Part shown: piece by piece, positions 4,701 through 19,716 of the stretch
How positions within the stretch are numbered: the stretch's first letter is position 1
Layout: the number at the start of each line of letters is the position of its first letter
Assembly: GCA_054661495.1 (NCBI GenBank)
Contig: BAAFSQ010000154.1
Span: 1-23,740, forward strand
Direction: 5' to 3'
From: Zygophlyctis sp. KS116
Lineage: Eukaryota; Fungi; Chytridiomycota
Length of the DNA stretch: 23,740 nucleotides
The notes under the pieces: model-generated
What the model saw: the letters and a program-made list of their open reading frames with translations, nothing else
Databases searched by the model: none
Told to the model about the DNA's origin: nothing
Translations under genes and position numbers: made by a program

Positions 4701-6455
4701 TTGATCCAAATTCGTATTATTTGATTCGCTGCTTCGCTGATGAATCTATAACTCGACCGGAGCCTGATTCTAATAACAACCCACTTTCAAACTATAAGGA
4801 TTCAGAAATTAAAGAATTATCAAGTAAGTTTCTTAATTTTGATAATCTAAAGATGACCTGAAAGATGATACTTACCGGCGCAAAAATGATTCATCACCAA
4901 AGCATCAATTGTTTTCATATGATGAGTTTCATGATGTTTCTGACGAGATAAGCTCGGAATTCGGAAAATTTTCGTTTGGTGCAGATGTAGAGGATGGCGA
5001 AGTAAAGATTCTTAGGCCGACTCCTTGGAGTATAGATGATAACTATTTTTTGAAGCTGCCTACTTCGACGCATGAACCGTAAGATTTTCGCTAAGACTCA
5101 ACTTAAGAGCTATAGCCATTCCGCTACTAGTTTCCCTAAAGAATATTAATCTATCGATTCGTCTTAGAGGAGATAACAGTCCTGAATTTAATTCTCTCGT
5201 AAAAAAAGGGTTGATGCTTCAAGAAGAAGCTCTAGATTTTGACTCAGAACTCTTAGATTCTTCTCCTAGCTTGGAAATCAAACTCCAAAATATGAATATG
5301 GAGCTTGAAACATTTAGAGAAATGATCATGTGCTTTCGTCTTCGTCTTACCGCTAAAGATATTGAAATTTTAGATCATTTAAATTCTTCGGAATTTACTA
5401 AATTTATGGCCGCAGTTGTTCCGGACTCAAATCAACGACCAAGAGAAACAAACAGAGACATGATTAAACTGGAATTCTCTCAACATAGCCCAAAAGACGG
5501 CAAAAGTGGGGTACTCGAACATAATATTAAGGTATTCTTTGAATTAAGGGCTCAAAATTTCTAGCTGGCCGTGTTTCCAATCAGATTACAGATTGATCAA
5601 AGAACTCTAGACTTTTTGATTAAATTCTTTGGAGACAGCAAAATTTCTTCAGAATCCTCTGGAAACTCGGATATTCCTGATGAAACCTTTTTTCGTATTT
5701 TATTTGAATCAACTTTAACAATTAGAGAGCGTGCAGATAACCCCCATAATATTTAAAATTGATTACAATCCAAAGACGTTTGATATGAGCGACTTTGCAT
5801 CTGGAAATTATGTAGAATTACTACATTTTTTTGCATTAGATGATTTGAAGTTAACTTTGGATTGTATAAAACTCTACGGTGTACTTTTTCACAAATTTAA
5901 ATGATTAGATTAAAGGATGGAAAAAATTGGGTGAATCAATCGGAAAGTACTGGATCCCAAGGGTATATAATACACAAATACCCAATTTAGCTTCAGGAAT
6001 ATCAGGAATAAGATCTGTGCTAAATTTGGGGACTGGCGTTGCCGACTTGATTCTCCTCCCTCTTGAAGAATATAAAAAAGAAGGAAAAGTTCTTCGAGGC
6101 TTAAGAAAAGGTCCGAAATATTTTATAAAAAGATAGGAGCCAAATCCCTGATACAAAACACAGCTGCAGAGAGTATTAAAATTGGCAGTTCTCTTGCGAT
6201 GGGAACCAAAATCCTCCTAGAAAAGGCTGAAGATATTTTTGAGGAAGGGTCAATTTCTACAAAATCTGAAAAACATTCTCATGGAACGGTTATAGCAATT
6301 CCAACCCATATATCAAATGGACAGGTATTAAATCTTGATTAAAAGAATAGATTCGTGCTGTTCCAATTGCAATTCTAAAACCAATGCGCAAATCTATAGG
6401 AACTCTAGGCCAATTGATGTCTCAAGTCTCTAAAGGACTCTCTGGAAAAGATTAA
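1752..6455 (+). CDS. ATG2: Autophagy-related protein 2 (lipid-transfer protein), about 18 exons, about 1400 aa
   Basis: N-terminal chorein-like segment (FILSQSLGKYLD...GRISRLELDIPWSN). C-terminal ATG2 motifs RPRETN, FPIRLQIDQRTLDFLIKFF, KIDYNPK, GIRSVLNLGTGVADLILLPLEEYKKEG and IRAVPIAILKPM. Seventeen GT-AG introns of 25-33 nt (e.g. 1920-1944, 2117-2143, 3442-3467) join the fragments into one frame ending TAA 6453-6455. Confidence 0.88.
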
Positions 6456-7901: not shown

Positions 7902-9649
7902 TCACAAGACTTCTAGTTTTTCAAGTTTAACATAGTCATGAATAACCTAAATCTTTTTAATAAAGTAAACTTACATCTAGAGCTTGTTTTAATTCCAAAT
8001 ATCTTCGAGCTTCAGACAGCCAATCAAGAGCTAGTACACGCTGCCATCCTCTTAAGCGATTAATTTGTCTTGCAGCAGAGTCAATATCACCGCTAGACAT
8101 GTATTCATATGAATTTTCAAGAACATTTCCAGTGATTTCTCCAATTGGGGATCGAGGACCAAAAGAAGAAATTAGATAAGAGATTACTCCACCATTTTCA
8201 GGCATGTATCTGATTCTGCTAATATCTTTTCTTAGTTTTAGAAACGAATCGACCAAATCTTTATATTCTGGCACTCCAACTACTGCTAAATCTTTAGGTA
8301 AAGATGACAAAATAGTAGAAATAAATGGATATTTTGAGCCTGCAAGCCATAAACGTTCAAACTCTTTTTCAATTGAGTGAGGAGAATTAGATACAGCTTT
8401 TGAGAGATTTTCTAAAGCTATTTCTATATTTTGTAACTTGTATTTTTGTTCAAGCCTCGACGCGATATCCTCTGTCACATTCTGAAGAACTTGAACTTTG
8501 ACAGTCAAGTAATCCAATTTTGCCAATCTTCCGTCCCTTTCCTGATCCAACTTTTCTTCAACAATTGCTTCCCATGACTTTTTAAGTTCCTGTTCTTGAT
8601 TCAAGAGTGCATTAGATTTTTCTGTTTCATACTCATTTCTAATATTTTCGAGTTTTAATTTTTCTTCCTGTTGCATCTGATTTGTATATAAAGTTTTAAA
8701 TTCATCAAGCTTTTCTGAATATTCCTTTTCTAGCTCTAAAGCATGAGATGTCATTGCATTAACTGAAGACTCCCATTGTTGTTCTAAAACCTGAGAAAAC
8801 TCTGACCCTTGTTCTTGTAAAGCCTTTGAAATCAAATCATCCTGTTCTTTTTGTAGATTTGAAACATTTTCAAAAACTGTTTCTAATTCCCTATAAACTT
8901 GATTCAATCTAGGCTGCGCCTATGGTATTATAAAAAGATTATTATTACATCTGGAACATCCGCCATCAAATCCCCTAAAACTATTCCAAGATCCATACAA
9001 CTCTTACCAAGATTATTCAATGTATTATTTCCCCCAAAATTCATTTTTAAACTTGAAAAATCCAGTTTAGGATCCAAAACCTGTTCATTTTTATCATTTG
9101 AAAATGCAACTTTAACATCGACCACATTTTTAGAATATAAATCTTCTTTTCCTAAACTTGAGACTAAATAATCTGCTTTAGGACCATTTGTAGCATCTAC
9201 AGTCTCATTAACCATTTCTGACACCTGACCCGTGATAGTAGCAGGCTCTACTAAACTGACATCTTCCTTTCTCTCTTCAGACTTCATTTCTGACTCTTCT
9301 TTTGAATCTAACCTCGATTTTTCTTCCAATAGTCCACGGTCATAAGCCATTGGCGGTTCCCATTTATCATTGACATCCACATAGTATTGTGAATAATCTA
9401 TGGCTTCACCCGGCTTTGCATCTTTTATTCTCTGTTGTAACATTGCTTGTGCTAGTCCTTCCAAATCTCTTAATCTAGTGAAAGTCTTGTCTTCGTCATT
9501 CGGTTTTCCAAAATATGGTTTTAACTTGTTTGTACACAAATCATTCTTGGCTGCTTCTCTGACAAGGACGATTGTCAATACACCCGCACCAAGAGCGGTT
9601 GAGACTCTCTATGATGAGTTGAACATTTACTTACAAGAAACTTGCCCAT
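7902..9649 (-). CDS. MIC60: MICOS subunit Mic60 (mitofilin/Fcj1), 4 exons
   Basis: N-terminal hydrophobic segment, long coiled coil (ERDGRLAKLD), PENGGVISYLISS and mitofilin C-terminus GDIDSAARQINRLRGWQRVLALDWLSEARRYLELKQALD. First intron 9609-9634; stop TGA at 7902-7904. Confidence 0.88.
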
Positions 9650-12732: not shown

Positions 12733-12738
12733 TAAAAA

Positions 12739-13051
12739 ATGCGTAGAGGTAAATATAGATGAATTTATTATAGATTCTGTTCAAGAGAATCAAGTTTTAG
12801 ATTCACTATTAGAATCTCTTTCAAGACAGGAGGCAACTCAGTCACTTTTATCAAATGAATTAGAGTCTCAAGCTAAATTAATAGAAAATTTAGATTCTCA
12901 GACTGAAAATCAAGATGTTCTTATTAGATCTACACATCAGAATTTATTACAAGTACAATCAGAGGTGAATACTAGTTTTGATTTATTTTGGATTATAATT
13001 GGACTATTATTTATATTGTTTGGACTATTGATATTCATAAAATATACATGA
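12739..13051 (+). CDS. Small tail-anchored Qc-SNARE (Syn8/syntaxin-8/Tlg1-like), 95 aa, not in the ORF track
   Basis: Exon 1 12739-12748, 25-nt intron 12749-12773, exon 2 12774-13051 give MRRDSVQENQVLDSLLESLSRQEATQSLLSNELESQAKLIENLDSQTENQDVLIRSTHQNLLQVQSEVNTSFDLFWIIIGLLFILFGLLIFIKYT*: a heptad SNARE motif with a central Q (NELESQ) and a C-terminal transmembrane helix. Confidence 0.8.
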
Positions 13052-13287: not shown

Positions 13288-15523
13288 ATGGCTTCCCCTG
13301 AAGAATTGGCAAACTACCACTATAATAATTTTAATAATTTCTTGGGCTCAAAATCGTCTTCAACAGTCTTGAATCATCAGGCAAAGAATAAATTGGCTAA
13401 ATTAACAAAATCTCAGTTTTCGGAATTGGCCACAGACGTAAACGATGAAATTGAACGGAGGAAAATGAATACTGCAGATCATTTACCCTTTATTAATGAA
13501 TATCCAATGAAACGGAATCAGGCCAGGGAAAAATTATCAACGCTCAATGAAAGGAGATTTACGGATCTCGCGTCAGATGTGTTGGCAGAATTAATTAGAA
13601 GATATCCTGCATGGTATATTTTAGGTTTTAGAAAATTATAGTAGTAGAAAGGTTATCAAGACTCATGATGTATTGCCAAAATCAGACAAGGATAAGAATG
13701 CTTTAGAAAGAATTAAAGGTCAATCAGTGGCTCCTTCTATAGGTTTGGCACGGTCATTGTCAAATTCAGATGTTGCTCCTGGAAAGAATTATAATTCTAT
13801 AATGTCAAATGCTAGTAAAGTAGATGGGACAAGTAAAATTAAAGAATATGAGTTGAGGATGTCGGAATATCAGACTCAAATTACAGATTATGAATTGAAA
13901 AATTTGGAATTGGAAACAAAAGTTTATGTAAATTTTTAAAAAACTTAGATTTAGAAATTTTCTCAATTGAAAACAGAAAATGAAAGACTACAATTAGAAT
14001 TGAATAGATTGAAAATTGTAAGTGGTTTAAACTATAATTTTCAAGAGTGAAGATTCAACAAAAGATGCTCATAAAGGGATTGAGGAAAAATATCAAGTCT
14101 TGGAAGAACAATATCAGGGTTTAAAAGAAGATTACGAGAATCAAGAACAGGTATTTTTAGGCTTTGTAAACTTTAGCTGACTCTTGCTATTCGTGCAGAG
14201 GCAAATTCTTTACTGGAAGAAGTCAAAAATATTAATAGTGAAAGGGATAAGCTTTTGATCTCTTTTAATGAGCTTAAAGAAGAAAACAGTAGAAATATTC
14301 TAGAAATTGAAAGATTGAAAAAGGAAAATATCGAATCGGCTAAACTGTTTTTAGAGGAAGATGTAATAACTTGAACTAACTTGCTAGAAAAATGAAAGTA
14401 ATGAATCTATCTTAGAGGATTCTTTAAAATCTGCTCAAGAGGATATAACCCAAGGAACGCCTCTGGAAAATTTCCAGGATGCAGAAAATAATCCAGAAGC
14501 TCCAACGATGGATGATCATTCAGATACATCTACTGACAAGGAAGCAAATAATTCTTCTCCTTTGAAAAGCTCTCCCAATAAATCTCAAGAGAAGGAAATT
14601 CCCAAACAAGAAACTCAAGAGGAAAGTGATAATCAGGCGCGAATGCCTAATTTCTTTGAAAATACTTTAATTAAGAAGCAGCCAAGAGTTGCTTATGAAG
14701 AGGCTCTACAGGATTTATTCCTCAACGCTGAGTAATTTAGTTTAACTAATTTCTAGAATGAAAGAGTCTACCGGTGTACTGATTTCAATGAAGGAAATTG
14801 TTTTATCATGTAAATCTATCACTGAAGATGCCTCTGAATTGGAGGCAAATTATTCTATTAAAAATGATGCTGATTTAAAAGCAGATCTTTCTCAGGCACT
14901 GACTAAACTTATGGCTTCTGCAAAGGATCATGCAGCGAATCCTTCTGATGAATCTTTACGGGCATTGCACTCGTCATCATCAAAGCTTACTTCTGTATTA
15001 GAGAATCTTGTAAACTCCTTTGTTAGTATGGATGAAAATAGCAGAGACTATGACAACCTTAATTCTCAAGACGACTCTTATTTGAATGATGAGTATGAAT
15101 ATTATGATCACCCTCAAAATTATTCCAACGATCAGCTCAAGGTAATACTTAAAACTCTAATCCCAGGGATTTCTTGAAGAACAAACAGATTTTATTGTTC
15201 GTTCAATTCAAACTCTTTTAAATACCATGAGAGAGCCTGGACCATATGGTGATGAATTTACAGAAATTATACGTGAAATTATGGCAGTGGTTGATATTGT
15301 CATTGAGACATGTCGCCCATCAATGCTAGAAATAAGTGATAGCCCTCAGCTTGCCGAGATATTCGAGGAGTTACATACTGTAAGTCGACAACTAGAATCT
15401 TTTGGATCTGAAATGGTTGGACCTGCTGGCCAGACTGATAAACAATTGAAACAAAAAATGGCTTCATCTTCTTATGAAATAGCTAAATTTGTAAAGGAGC
15501 TGCTGACGTTTTTGGAATCATAA
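13288..15523 (+). CDS. SPA2: Polarisome scaffold Spa2/GIT-like protein, multi-exon
   Basis: Two SHD repeats (AKNKLAKLTKSQFSELATDVNDEIERR; RNQAREKLSTLNERRFTDLASDVLAELIRRYP), a coiled coil, and C-terminal helical bundles ending KQKMASSSYEIAKFVKELL. Likely ATG 13288. Confidence 0.85.
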
Positions 15524-16633: not shown

Positions 16634-19032
16634 TTATTGAGGAAGCTCAATATCAGAGTCACAAGAAGAATCTTCTTCAAGTCCAGTCTCGTTTGAAGGG
16701 CCGTGATCTATATCTATTGTAGCATCTTCAATGGCAGGAAAAGGATCTCTCCAATACGTTAAATCTGCATACTCGGTGTTCATGGACTGTCGAACACTAG
16801 GAAATACTTGATCTACAATATCATTTAGCTGCTTGTAAGATGATTTGAAATTTCGAAGTAATTCTTGCTTAAGCTCTCCAGAAGGATCCACCGTAAAAAT
16901 TCGAGATGATGGAACATCCACACTACGGTATGACAATGCATCCTATCCGTTTATATGAGATATATTACAGTAATACGGTTTCCAAAACCTGCATAAAATG
17001 GATTAGGATTTTTATCTCCAAAAAGTTTTTTAATATCCCTTAAACAAGTAATCTTGAATTCCTCTGGTTTCCGTAGAATTACTTCTCTATACAATCAACG
17101 GATTCATTTTTTACCTATGGAACGATTTAAATAATCGATCCGGGGACATAATTATCGGCCCTTCAGGAAGTTGGCAGCTCCCTTGCTCTATACTATCGAG
17201 ATATACACGAGTAGAGGTTGATTGTCCTATTGCACGTGAAGTAAGATAAAGAATTAAATATCCATTTTGCCTGATGTTTGTGTATAAATTAGCGACCCCT
17301 GCATGAGTCCAGTCTCTCCCGACCATAGTAAACATGTGTCCCAAAACATCAGATCTTTATTTAATCTCTAAAAGTACTTACTTTGTTATCGTACCGTCAA
17401 CATCAGAAATTACGATTTTAGATGAATATTTCCATAGAAATATTTTCGCTGTGCATGTTGCTTTTCCTTGGAATTTCGAGTCTACCGTAAATTCAACAGT
17501 ATTAGACCCTTTCTTCAAATTTAATGACTTCTTTAAATCTTAATTAATTAATATTTACCAATTGATCAGAATTAAGACGTAAACTTTTAGCATAATTTGG
17601 TTTCCTTTCTTCTTTTTTCGGCGAAGGAGATCTACTTAATTTATCCTATTATTATCATAAAAAAGGATTACAGATCCAGGACTCTTTGACCACCAGTTTT
17701 TTATCGCAGAAAAATACGCTTTTGATTCTGTAGGAGCCTTTTTAAAACTTGAATCAGATAGCGGTTTACCAAATACAGCAAGAGAAGTTATCATCGGAGC
17801 AGCTACTACCCAAGGATAGTATTGATTCTGAAATCGAATAACCAGTTGCGGATCGTTCAGGATAGTTGGATTCGAGTCAAATTCTAAAAAAGAAATCCTA
17901 TGCTTTTCAAAAATCTTGTAATTATCCTAATATTAATAATTCAAAAATTTACATCATCTTTGTCTTGTTTAAGATCTTTAACTCCGCATAAAGACATTGC
18001 AATAATATCTTTTGACTCATTTTGAGAATTGTTTTGAGTAATGATTGATACATCTATTGCAATTTTATCATTAGCATTGGTAGAATTATCAGCATTTTCT
18101 GTTGCCTTATTTGCTACGGTCTGATTGACATTAGGATCAATTATACAAGGTTCTATTTTATTCGAACCATCTATTTGATGATCTTTAGCGGCTTCAAAAG
18201 ATTCTGATGTAATAGCAGGTATATCCTCATTCCCAAGGGAAAGAGTAGGTCCATTTTCCAGACTAACAGTGCCAGTAAAATTATCATTAAATTCTTGATT
18301 ATTATGAGTAGGCATAGCAATCCCTGAATTATTATGTTCCCATTCATCTTCCTTTACTGGAAGCCCTCCCCATTTCCAACTCCATTCTCTCTTTAACGGT
18401 GGCGGACTATTCTAAAAATTATCAAGTGAATAAAATTACTTGAGCTTCCACTCTTTCAATTTCCGTATCACTTAAAGGCTCTAAATCATTATCATGAATA
18501 CTCTATACCATGAACTAAATGATCATCTACAACTGCCCTATATTCTGTTGCTGAATGAACCCGTTTATGTCCAGAAGATATTTCCAACCGAGTAACCCCT
18601 TGTAGGTCTAATAGATCTACGTCTTCAGTATTAACACTTGGTAATATAATTGGCGATGTAGCATAATCTAGAGGCACTGGATTAATCGTTTCAATAACAA
18701 AAAATGCTTCACCTGCATCTCCAACTTTCATCAATAGTTGAGTGAGGCGTCCGTTCACGGTGACATCAACCTGTAAGTTAAACCCTTGGTTGATAAACCT
18801 TTTTTTCACTCGGTAATAACAATTTTAGTTTTCCAAATCTAACATGAAAGGGAGAACAAGCCAAATTTCCATCCGGACCTTCAACAACAATTACATCTAT
18901 CGCACCAGAAAGAGTTGAAGGATTAATATCAGTCATTATATTCCCTACAGCAGAAAGAGTATCAATAACCTATGTTCTATATAAATCCCAAGTTATTACC
19001 TTTCCAGCGGCAAATGCTACAACAGATGTCAT
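16634..19032 (-). CDS. PAH1: Lipin / Mg-dependent phosphatidate phosphatase (Pah1/Ned1), multi-exon
   Basis: N-Lip [16 protein letters not shown]...[20 protein letters not shown], middle domain ([22 protein letters not shown]), catalytic [30 protein letters not shown]. Exon 1 19000-19032 plus a 30-nt intron 18970-18999 restores an N-terminal amphipathic-helix region. Confidence 0.93.
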
Positions 19033-19716
19033 CTAAACAGTTAAGACCTACCCTAAGAGCCTCCAGCTTCAAGATTTTAAGTCAATCTTTTACTACTTTC
19101 AGAGGATCATCTCTAAAATGGATTCCTAATGCATTAACTGTCAGTCGGATATGTATGAGCCCATTGATCTCTTGGCAGATTATAACTCAACAGTCAGATC
19201 TTGCCCTCTTAACCCTTGCGATCGCATCAGTCACTGATGTTTTAGATGGCTATATTGCACGAAGGTATAATATGAAAACTAAACTAGGATCATTTTTAGA
19301 TCCAATTGCGGATAAAGTTTTGGTTACTACACTTGTTGGATCATTATGGTATACAAGTGCTTTAGAACCTAGTCTAGCTGGATTAATTCTCTCTAGAGAT
19401 ATATTACTTGTGACTGGTGTTGGAATTTACCGAGCAAAAGCCTTGAAATTCTCTAGAGATTTTTTTAATTTTAAAATTGCAACACCTCAACTAGAAGAAG
19501 TTAAGCCTCCAATGATCTCAAAGATTAATACTGGATTACAATTAGGTCTTTTAGGACTTTTAGTTGGAAATGGAGTTTTATGGGAGATGCCAATGTTTTT
19601 ATTGGGACTAAAGTATGTTTTATTTATTTTATTTTAGAGCTTGTGTTGGAATTACTACAATCTGGTCTGGACTCAAATACTTTAAAATCGCGAAAACATT
19701 ATTCTTGAAGAAGTAA
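19026..19716 (+). CDS. CRD1: Cardiolipin synthase (CDP-alcohol phosphatidyltransferase family), 2 exons
   Basis: IPNALTVSRI, TDVLDGYIARRYNMKTKLGSFLDPIADK, RDILLV, EVKPPMISKINTGLQ, and after a short intron [25 protein letters not shown] looks like a mitochondrial presequence. In-frame ATGs at 18972, 19014 and 19026. Confidence 0.88.

Follow-up and report, generated by a model that had tools for sequence, protein, structure and literature searches.

The reading frames of two lipid genes, a lipin gene and a cardiolipin synthase-like gene, cross head-to-head in the chytrid Zygophlyctis sp. KS116. Both genes lie on contig BAAFSQ010000154.1 (assembly GCA_054661495.1), of which positions 1 to 23,740 of the forward strand make up the window analyzed here. 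The lipin gene is read from the minus strand and appears to begin with the ATG at 19032-19030, while the synthase-like gene is read from the plus strand and most likely begins with the ATG at 19014-19016. The two coding sequences would then share 19 nucleotides (nt; 19014..19032), and in this species they would share at least the 7 nt from 19026 to 19032. The explanation favored here, to which we give a probability of roughly 60%, is that two housekeeping lipid genes lost their divergent spacer in a compact genome and that their linkage was then frozen, which would make the crossed starts a by-product of compaction and not a lipid switch. The window is eukaryotic, with 34% G+C and very short introns, and the genome is extremely compact: its assembly comprises 12.7 megabases (Mb) at 34% G+C, and its introns measure 22-30 nt. 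The nearest named homologues are fungal.

The comparison with relatives draws on a word-based protein search and on contig look-ups, which yielded DNA for four lineages besides the window species. The five lineages compared below are the window species (the window itself and the lake metagenome contigs L003 and L033, which are of the same species at 97% identity), L001 (a Logan contig, with a synthase 69-75% identical to that of the window), L002 (a JGI contig, synthase 53-59% identical), and L031 and L032 (lake metagenomes, with lipin exon 2 about 90% and about 87% identical to the window, respectively). The contig that carries P0124 (JGI, NCBI, ENA) contributed a gene table only. A scan of metagenome contigs with the clade alignment returned distant relatives only, at 31-41% identity, and no member of the clade. 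Domain searches against Pfam were run exon by exon, one piece at a time.

The minus-strand gene (16634..19032, stop codon included) is predicted to encode a lipin, that is, a Pah1/LPIN-like phosphatidate phosphatase, of about 707 residues in about 11 exons. This model combines Pfam matches of the exon pieces with a splice chain. The pieces match Lipin_N, Lipin_mid (E 9e-21) and LNS2, with positions 11-226 of the LNS2 profile covered by four of them, and the C-LIP/LNS2 HAD-like domain carries the catalytic DVDGT (DxDxT). A constrained, heuristic splice search produced an open coding sequence that has introns of 22-30 nt and contains this motif. The exon borders of the model are approximate, except at introns 1 and 2. 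Judged by these features, the gene belongs to the lipin/Pah1 family, and Mg2+-dependent phosphatidate phosphatase activity is its predicted function.

The start of the lipin gene is central to the overlap. Exon 1 (19000..19032, minus strand) comprises 11 codons, which from 19032 read ATG ACA TCT GTT GTA GCA TTT GCC GCT GGA AAG, and an in-frame TAG stands immediately upstream of it. It is followed by intron 1 (18970..18999), which is 30 nt long with GT..AG borders, and by exon 2 (18799..18969), whose 57 codons form the N-LIP core and run into the INPSTLSG motif. The same 11-codon exon is found in all five lineages with its amino acids conserved, one variant being MSSVVASVAGK, and 8 of 10 third codon positions vary among them. 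Intron 1 occupies the same site throughout, at 30 nt in the window and 26, 26, 28 and 26 nt in the other lineages. The intron sequences are unrelated and keep only the GT and the AG, after which a near-identical exon 2 follows. Because the exon varies at synonymous positions and the intron retains its GT..AG borders around unrelated sequence, the two are best read as a genuine coding exon and a genuine intron.

The homology of exon 2 also calls for an upstream exon. Exon 2 matches positions 7-61 of the Lipin_N profile (E 7e-23), and the exon 3 piece continues the match (E 2e-07); exon 2 additionally matches solved chains of Tetrahymena Pah2. An in-frame stop lies immediately upstream of exon 2, so an upstream exon has to supply the residues that match the beginning of the Lipin_N profile. 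The spliced model places 26 residues before the NPxTLSG motif, as does P0125, an intronless outgroup homologue that starts with MTSIVTDLAGR and whose N-terminus is similar in sequence and equal in length. An N-terminal extension before NPxTLSG is normal, given that residue 17-18 is where the motif starts in the solved chains of Tetrahymena Pah2. In characterized lipins, this stretch is a membrane-binding amphipathic helix. The internal ATG at 18936-18934, if used as the start, would leave four residues before the motif. Overall, it seems that lipin begins at 19032 with an 11-codon exon and a mini-intron. Farther downstream, intron 2 (18771..18798, minus strand) is 28 nt long with GT..AG borders, and the Lipin_N profile resumes in the next frame from 18770. 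As far as SEKK, identity to exon 2 of the relatives is 90-100%; past that point, the read-through sequence diverges. The constrained splice search had picked a 22-nt intron 2, which is contradicted by homology, and 18798-18771 was used instead.

The plus-strand gene has an exon 1 at 19014..19612 that matches the Pfam family CDP-OH_P_transf (E 3e-28), and an exon 2 at 19638..19716 with a stop codon at 19714-19716. The intervening 25-nt intron (19613..19637, GTATGT..TAG) was placed from the sequence and by splice search, and removing it restores a C-terminal helix like that of the fungal homologues. The protein carries the complete signature D-x2-D-G-x2-A-R-x8-G-x3-D-x3-D, the residues of which are invariant in the alignment of homologues. 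Among named proteins, those most similar to it are cardiolipin synthases (CMP-forming) of fungi and insects, at 38-46% identity, and not PI, PS or choline/ethanolamine phosphotransferases. NCBIfam groups it with pgsA/ClsA, where it scores below the prokaryotic cut-offs. The gene can be assigned to the cardiolipin synthase-like CDP-alcohol phosphatidyltransferases of the Crd1/CRLS1 type, and its predicted reaction is the formation of cardiolipin, and not of phosphatidylglycerophosphate, from phosphatidylglycerol and CDP-diacylglycerol.

When read from the ATG at 19014, the synthase starts with a presequence-like stretch of 35 codons (19014..19118) that contains 6 Lys and Arg, no Asp or Glu, and 11 Ser and Thr. 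The corresponding N-termini are basic and rich in Ser and Thr in all four lineages in which they could be read, with 0-1 acidic residues and lengths of 35, 31, 76 and 38 codons. Their make-up appears to be as expected of a mitochondrial presequence. The longest of them is in L002 (4674-4901), where the presequence takes up 76 codons, compared with 31-38 elsewhere, contains one acidic residue and is still in frame. The N-terminal extension of the synthase is very plastic.

Three in-frame ATGs precede the conserved part of the synthase in the window, at 18972, where the open reading frame begins, at 19014 and at 19026. The next in-frame Met (19155-19157) lies inside the Pfam match and the first conserved helix, downstream of the invariant P-N-x-L-T-x-x-R. 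The ATG at 19014..19016 is most likely the start codon, because an equivalent ATG occurs in every one of the five lineages, two of which offer no other. It is in frame with the WIPNALT motif wherever the contig reaches that motif; the L032 contig ends before WIPNALT, and the conserved ATG there heads an open frame. No other in-frame ATG occurs upstream of the domain in L031, or in L002, whose frame stays open from the conserved ATG over 76 codons. This start codon lies antisense to lipin codons 6-7. Specifically, its three bases pair with the final CA of codon 6 (Ala, GCA) and the first T of codon 7 (Phe TTT or Ser TCG). The second ATG (19026..19028), which forms part of the heptamer ATGTCAT, is found only in the window species (the window, L003 and L033) and in L032. 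It arises whenever lipin codon 2 ends in A, and the heptamer is a lineage-specific by-product of synonymous choice in that codon. The upstream ATG (18972..18974) lies within lipin intron 1, is species-specific and is absent from L001, L002 and L031.

Much of this gene structure had been proposed in the first-pass annotation of the window. The lipin and CRD1-like identities that it gave agree with the Pfam matches, the DVDGT motif and the CDP-alcohol signature, and the lipin ATG at 19030-19032, with its 11-codon exon and 30-nt GT-AG intron, is backed by the comparison of five lineages. The ATGTCAT that it described is present at 19026-19032. It had also taken 19026 as the CRD1 start. This is indeed the last ATG before the domain, but the conserved start is 19014. 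The head-to-head overlap that it put at 7 nt or more, with no intergenic DNA, is retained in the sense that 7 nt is the minimum, and its extent is revised to a probable 19 nt.

It is unlikely, although conceivable, that the synthase starts not at 19014 but at 19026, for an overlap of 7 nt, or at 18972, for a genomic span of 61 nt that includes the lipin intron. All three ATGs are in frame, and each would give an acid-free, presequence-like N-terminus. Moreover, a transcription start at 19015-19025 would make 19026 the first AUG, and the candidate promoter word at 18978-18985 (described below) would, at the spacing generally known for such elements, put the start site near 19008-19020. The relatives argue for 19014, given that the other two ATGs have no counterpart in most of them. 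It is very improbable that there is no true coding overlap and that one of the gene models is wrong. Lipin would then start at 18936-18934, or the synthase would have an unrecognized 5' exon, an intron or a non-AUG start downstream of 19032. The internal lipin ATG, which the first-pass annotation had named as the alternative, was chosen by metagenome gene callers (P0121), which do not model introns. Its use would cost the protein about 22 residues that have counterparts in the Lipin_N profile and at the N-termini of homologues, and it is contradicted further by exon 1, whose substitution pattern is coding-like and whose GT..AG intron is conserved in the five lineages. As for the synthase, its frame in L002 and L031 is open from the conserved ATG, with no other ATG available.

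Given a 19-nt overlap, the transcription start of each gene would lie inside its partner, because transcription must begin upstream of each AUG. That the promoters are inside the partner genes had been anticipated in the first-pass annotation, and it follows logically from coding sequences that cross; the positions proposed here are predictions. On the synthase side, no plus-strand ATG is found between about 18847 and 18971. Lipin intron 1 contains a candidate core-promoter word, TATATAAA (18978..18985, plus strand), which lies 29-36 nt upstream of the ATG at 19014 and could act as its promoter. Intron 1 of the relatives is also A+T-rich but does not contain the exact TATA word. The lipin mini-intron may double as the core promoter of the synthase. 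On the lipin side, the distance from the start codon to the first upstream minus-strand ATG is 43-76 nt in four lineages, and the 81 nt available for L032 contain no such ATG. This pattern points to a short lipin leader that begins inside the presequence-coding stretch of the synthase, and the lipin core promoter and 5' untranslated region (UTR) probably lie within 19014..19118.

The same stretch contains a telomere-like word, CTCTTAGGGTA (19050..19060, minus strand), upstream of the lipin ATG. A word of the CTCTTAGGGTA type is found 25-45 nt upstream of this ATG in four of the five lineages (the window, L001, L031 and L032), the copy in L001 being at about 4985-4996 (plus strand). Two of these lineages carry it in the lipin sense and two in the synthase sense, and in each case it encodes the Leu-Arg of the presequence (CTA AGA or CTT AGG). 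The word is not enriched in the window, where it occurs once and no more often than in shuffles, or in the genome, where it occurs 8 times compared with 28 times for the reversed control. A role as a general promoter element was therefore rejected. The word may have a role specific to this locus.

The lipin-synthase linkage, which had first been noted in the window alone, is shared by the relatives. The two genes are head-to-head neighbors in every related locus, including the gene table of the P0124 contig, and the block SPA2/GIT - ARL - lipin - synthase - RNH202 - NNF1 - MRE11 is kept wherever the contigs reach (L001, L002 and L003). Thus, at least seven functionally unrelated genes keep their order and orientation at about 54-75% synthase identity. 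Outside the clade, the orthologous synthase of Dimargaris verticillata lies between PPIP5K-like and HECT genes, 1.4-1.8 kilobases away, and has no lipin beside it, and the unrelated lipin contig L035 (51% G+C) has ordinary upstream DNA. By this comparison, the linkage appears specific to the compact clade.

Other junctions in the window are comparably tight. The ATG of PEX1 (12732-12730, minus strand, with the PEX-1N domain downstream) is separated by a spacer of 6 base pairs (bp; 12733-12738) from a plus-strand ATG (12739-12741), which opens an exon of 10 nt; beyond a GT..AG intron of 25 nt, a putative SNARE-like, tail-anchored open reading frame follows. The stop codon of the SPA2/GIT-like gene (TAA, 15521-15523, plus strand) abuts that of the ARL GTPase gene (15526-15524, minus strand) with zero spacer, and the convergent stops of the synthase and RNH202 are 79 nt apart.

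If the overlap is a by-product of compaction, each gene would have a core promoter to itself, embedded where the sequence of its partner is under least constraint. The synthase promoter would lie in the A+T-rich lipin mini-intron and first exons, and the lipin promoter in the loosely constrained, probably mitochondrial presequence region of the synthase. Each mRNA would have a very short 5' UTR. Once the genes overlapped, no rearrangement could separate lipin from the synthase without destroying both, and for this reason the linkage would persist. Its conservation would reflect the frozen synteny of the whole block, and the pairing of lipin with a cardiolipin synthase in particular would be a historical accident. 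Complementarity between the two mRNAs would span both leaders and at least 19 nt more, and the two initiation complexes would have to compete for one stretch of DNA. Because the template is shared and the mRNA ends are complementary, some mutual interference of the initiation complexes would be an unavoidable side effect, and no special regulation would be expected beyond it. The antisense ATG is held in place largely by lipin's own amino-acid constraint.

Several points weigh against this account and the 19-nt overlap on which it is built. The window species and L001 offer a downstream in-frame ATG instead of the conserved one, and its use in L001 would abolish the overlap entirely. The two invariant synonymous lipin sites that fix the antisense Met-Leu are indistinguishable from background, with a chance value of about 0.1. 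The SNARE-like partner in the 6-bp pair is weakly supported (Pfam SNARE, E 0.14). In addition, the overlap persists down to about 54% protein identity of the synthase and both enzymes draw on phosphatidic acid, so it may have a selected function. With regard to the synonymous sites, lipin exon 2 provides a measure of the background: it lies outside the overlap, and 17 of its 52 third positions are invariant too. Selection for dual coding is therefore not demonstrated, and it was rejected as a line of evidence.

A regulatory role seems less likely than a by-product of compaction. Lipin converts phosphatidic acid to diacylglycerol, cardiolipin synthase belongs to the CDP-diacylglycerol branch, and both are downstream of phosphatidic acid. 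With this established biochemistry in mind, the overlap could be a selected device in which transcription of lipin or of the synthase shuts out or modulates that of its partner, the means being promoter occlusion, head-on polymerase interference or antisense pairing. Such a device, akin to the coupling or exclusion of two phosphatidic-acid branches suggested in the earlier annotation, is quite doubtful. Its appeal lies in the retention of the overlap across the five lineages and in its position over the junction region of lipin exon 1 and intron 1, where antisense RNA might also mask the intron 1 donor site; antisense effects on splicing and expression have been proposed for compact genomes (PMC6009652). 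However, nothing was found that singles out this gene pair. The frozen synteny of a block of unrelated genes explains the conservation equally well, junctions between unrelated genes in the same window are equally tight, synonymous sites show no significant excess constraint, and in L001 a non-overlapping synthase start is available. Highly unlikely, too, is a more specific form of the idea, in which the 19-nt crossed start is a selected toggle that commits each chromosome copy to one of two branches, diacylglycerol/storage or cardiolipin, with the orientation-flipping telomere-like word as a shared control element. Two initiation complexes would then exclude each other on one template, and the synthase mRNA would, at its 5' end, be antisense to exon 1 of lipin, start codon included.

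Compaction, the explanation preferred here, has precedents in other reduced genomes. Accounts of microsporidia and nucleomorphs describe genes that overlap, transcripts that start inside a neighboring gene and 5' UTRs that are very short (PMC3629993, PMC6009652, PMC3514955). As a 2005 study is cited in PMC3629993 and PMC6009652, microsporidia resemble the present locus in that intergenic DNA is nearly gone and gene order is conserved; in microsporidia, it is mainly transcripts and not reading frames that overlap, and introns are almost absent. In contrast, the reading frames studied here probably share 19 nt, and a start codon lies antisense in the partner's first exon beside a mini-intron. 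The overlapping genes of nucleomorphs are comparable in that coding sequences of a nuclear-type eukaryotic genome overlap by anything from a few bases to some tens, with tiny introns and compaction as the cause, according to Gilson and McFadden (1996) as cited in PMC3629993. Cryptophyte nucleomorphs have 11-44 overlapping genes each, and the overlaps are most prevalent in the tail-to-tail orientation (PMC3514955), which makes the head-to-head type appear to be a rarer subtype. The present overlap differs from these in being head-to-head, with both promoters probably displaced into coding DNA, and in belonging to a free nucleus with a 12.7-Mb genome and not to the relict nucleus of an endosymbiont.

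The locus also resembles the head-to-head bidirectional-promoter pairs of animals and yeasts, in which close genes diverge and co-regulation or interference is possible. In classical pairs of this kind, the start sites do not overlap, and one promoter in the intergenic DNA between them serves both genes. The lipin-synthase pair was not classed with them, since there is no intergenic DNA and the coding sequences cross.

The arrangement has practical consequences for annotation. Gene callers that forbid overlaps or ignore introns of 26-30 nt will truncate both proteins. The public metagenome calls for this clade (P0001, P0002, P0004 and P0121-P0124) all begin at Met codons inside the genes and continue through the mini-introns, with the result that both proteins are truncated or falsely tailed in databases.

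Elsewhere in the window, a gene for Mitofilin/MIC60 is located at 7960-9608 on the minus strand (E 7e-47), which indicates that the organism retains cristae-organizing machinery. The organism is compact yet not amitochondriate: MIC60, cardiolipin synthesis and PEX1 are all kept.

In conclusion, the lipin and cardiolipin synthase-like genes provide a case, supported by comparison, of two eukaryotic nuclear reading frames that cross head-to-head, with codons of one gene supplying the start codon of the other. Both promoters would have been pushed into coding DNA or a mini-intron. This makes the uncultured lake lineage well suited to the question of how little dedicated promoter DNA RNA polymerase II needs, and to the question of whether mini-introns and presequences may serve as refuges for regulatory words.

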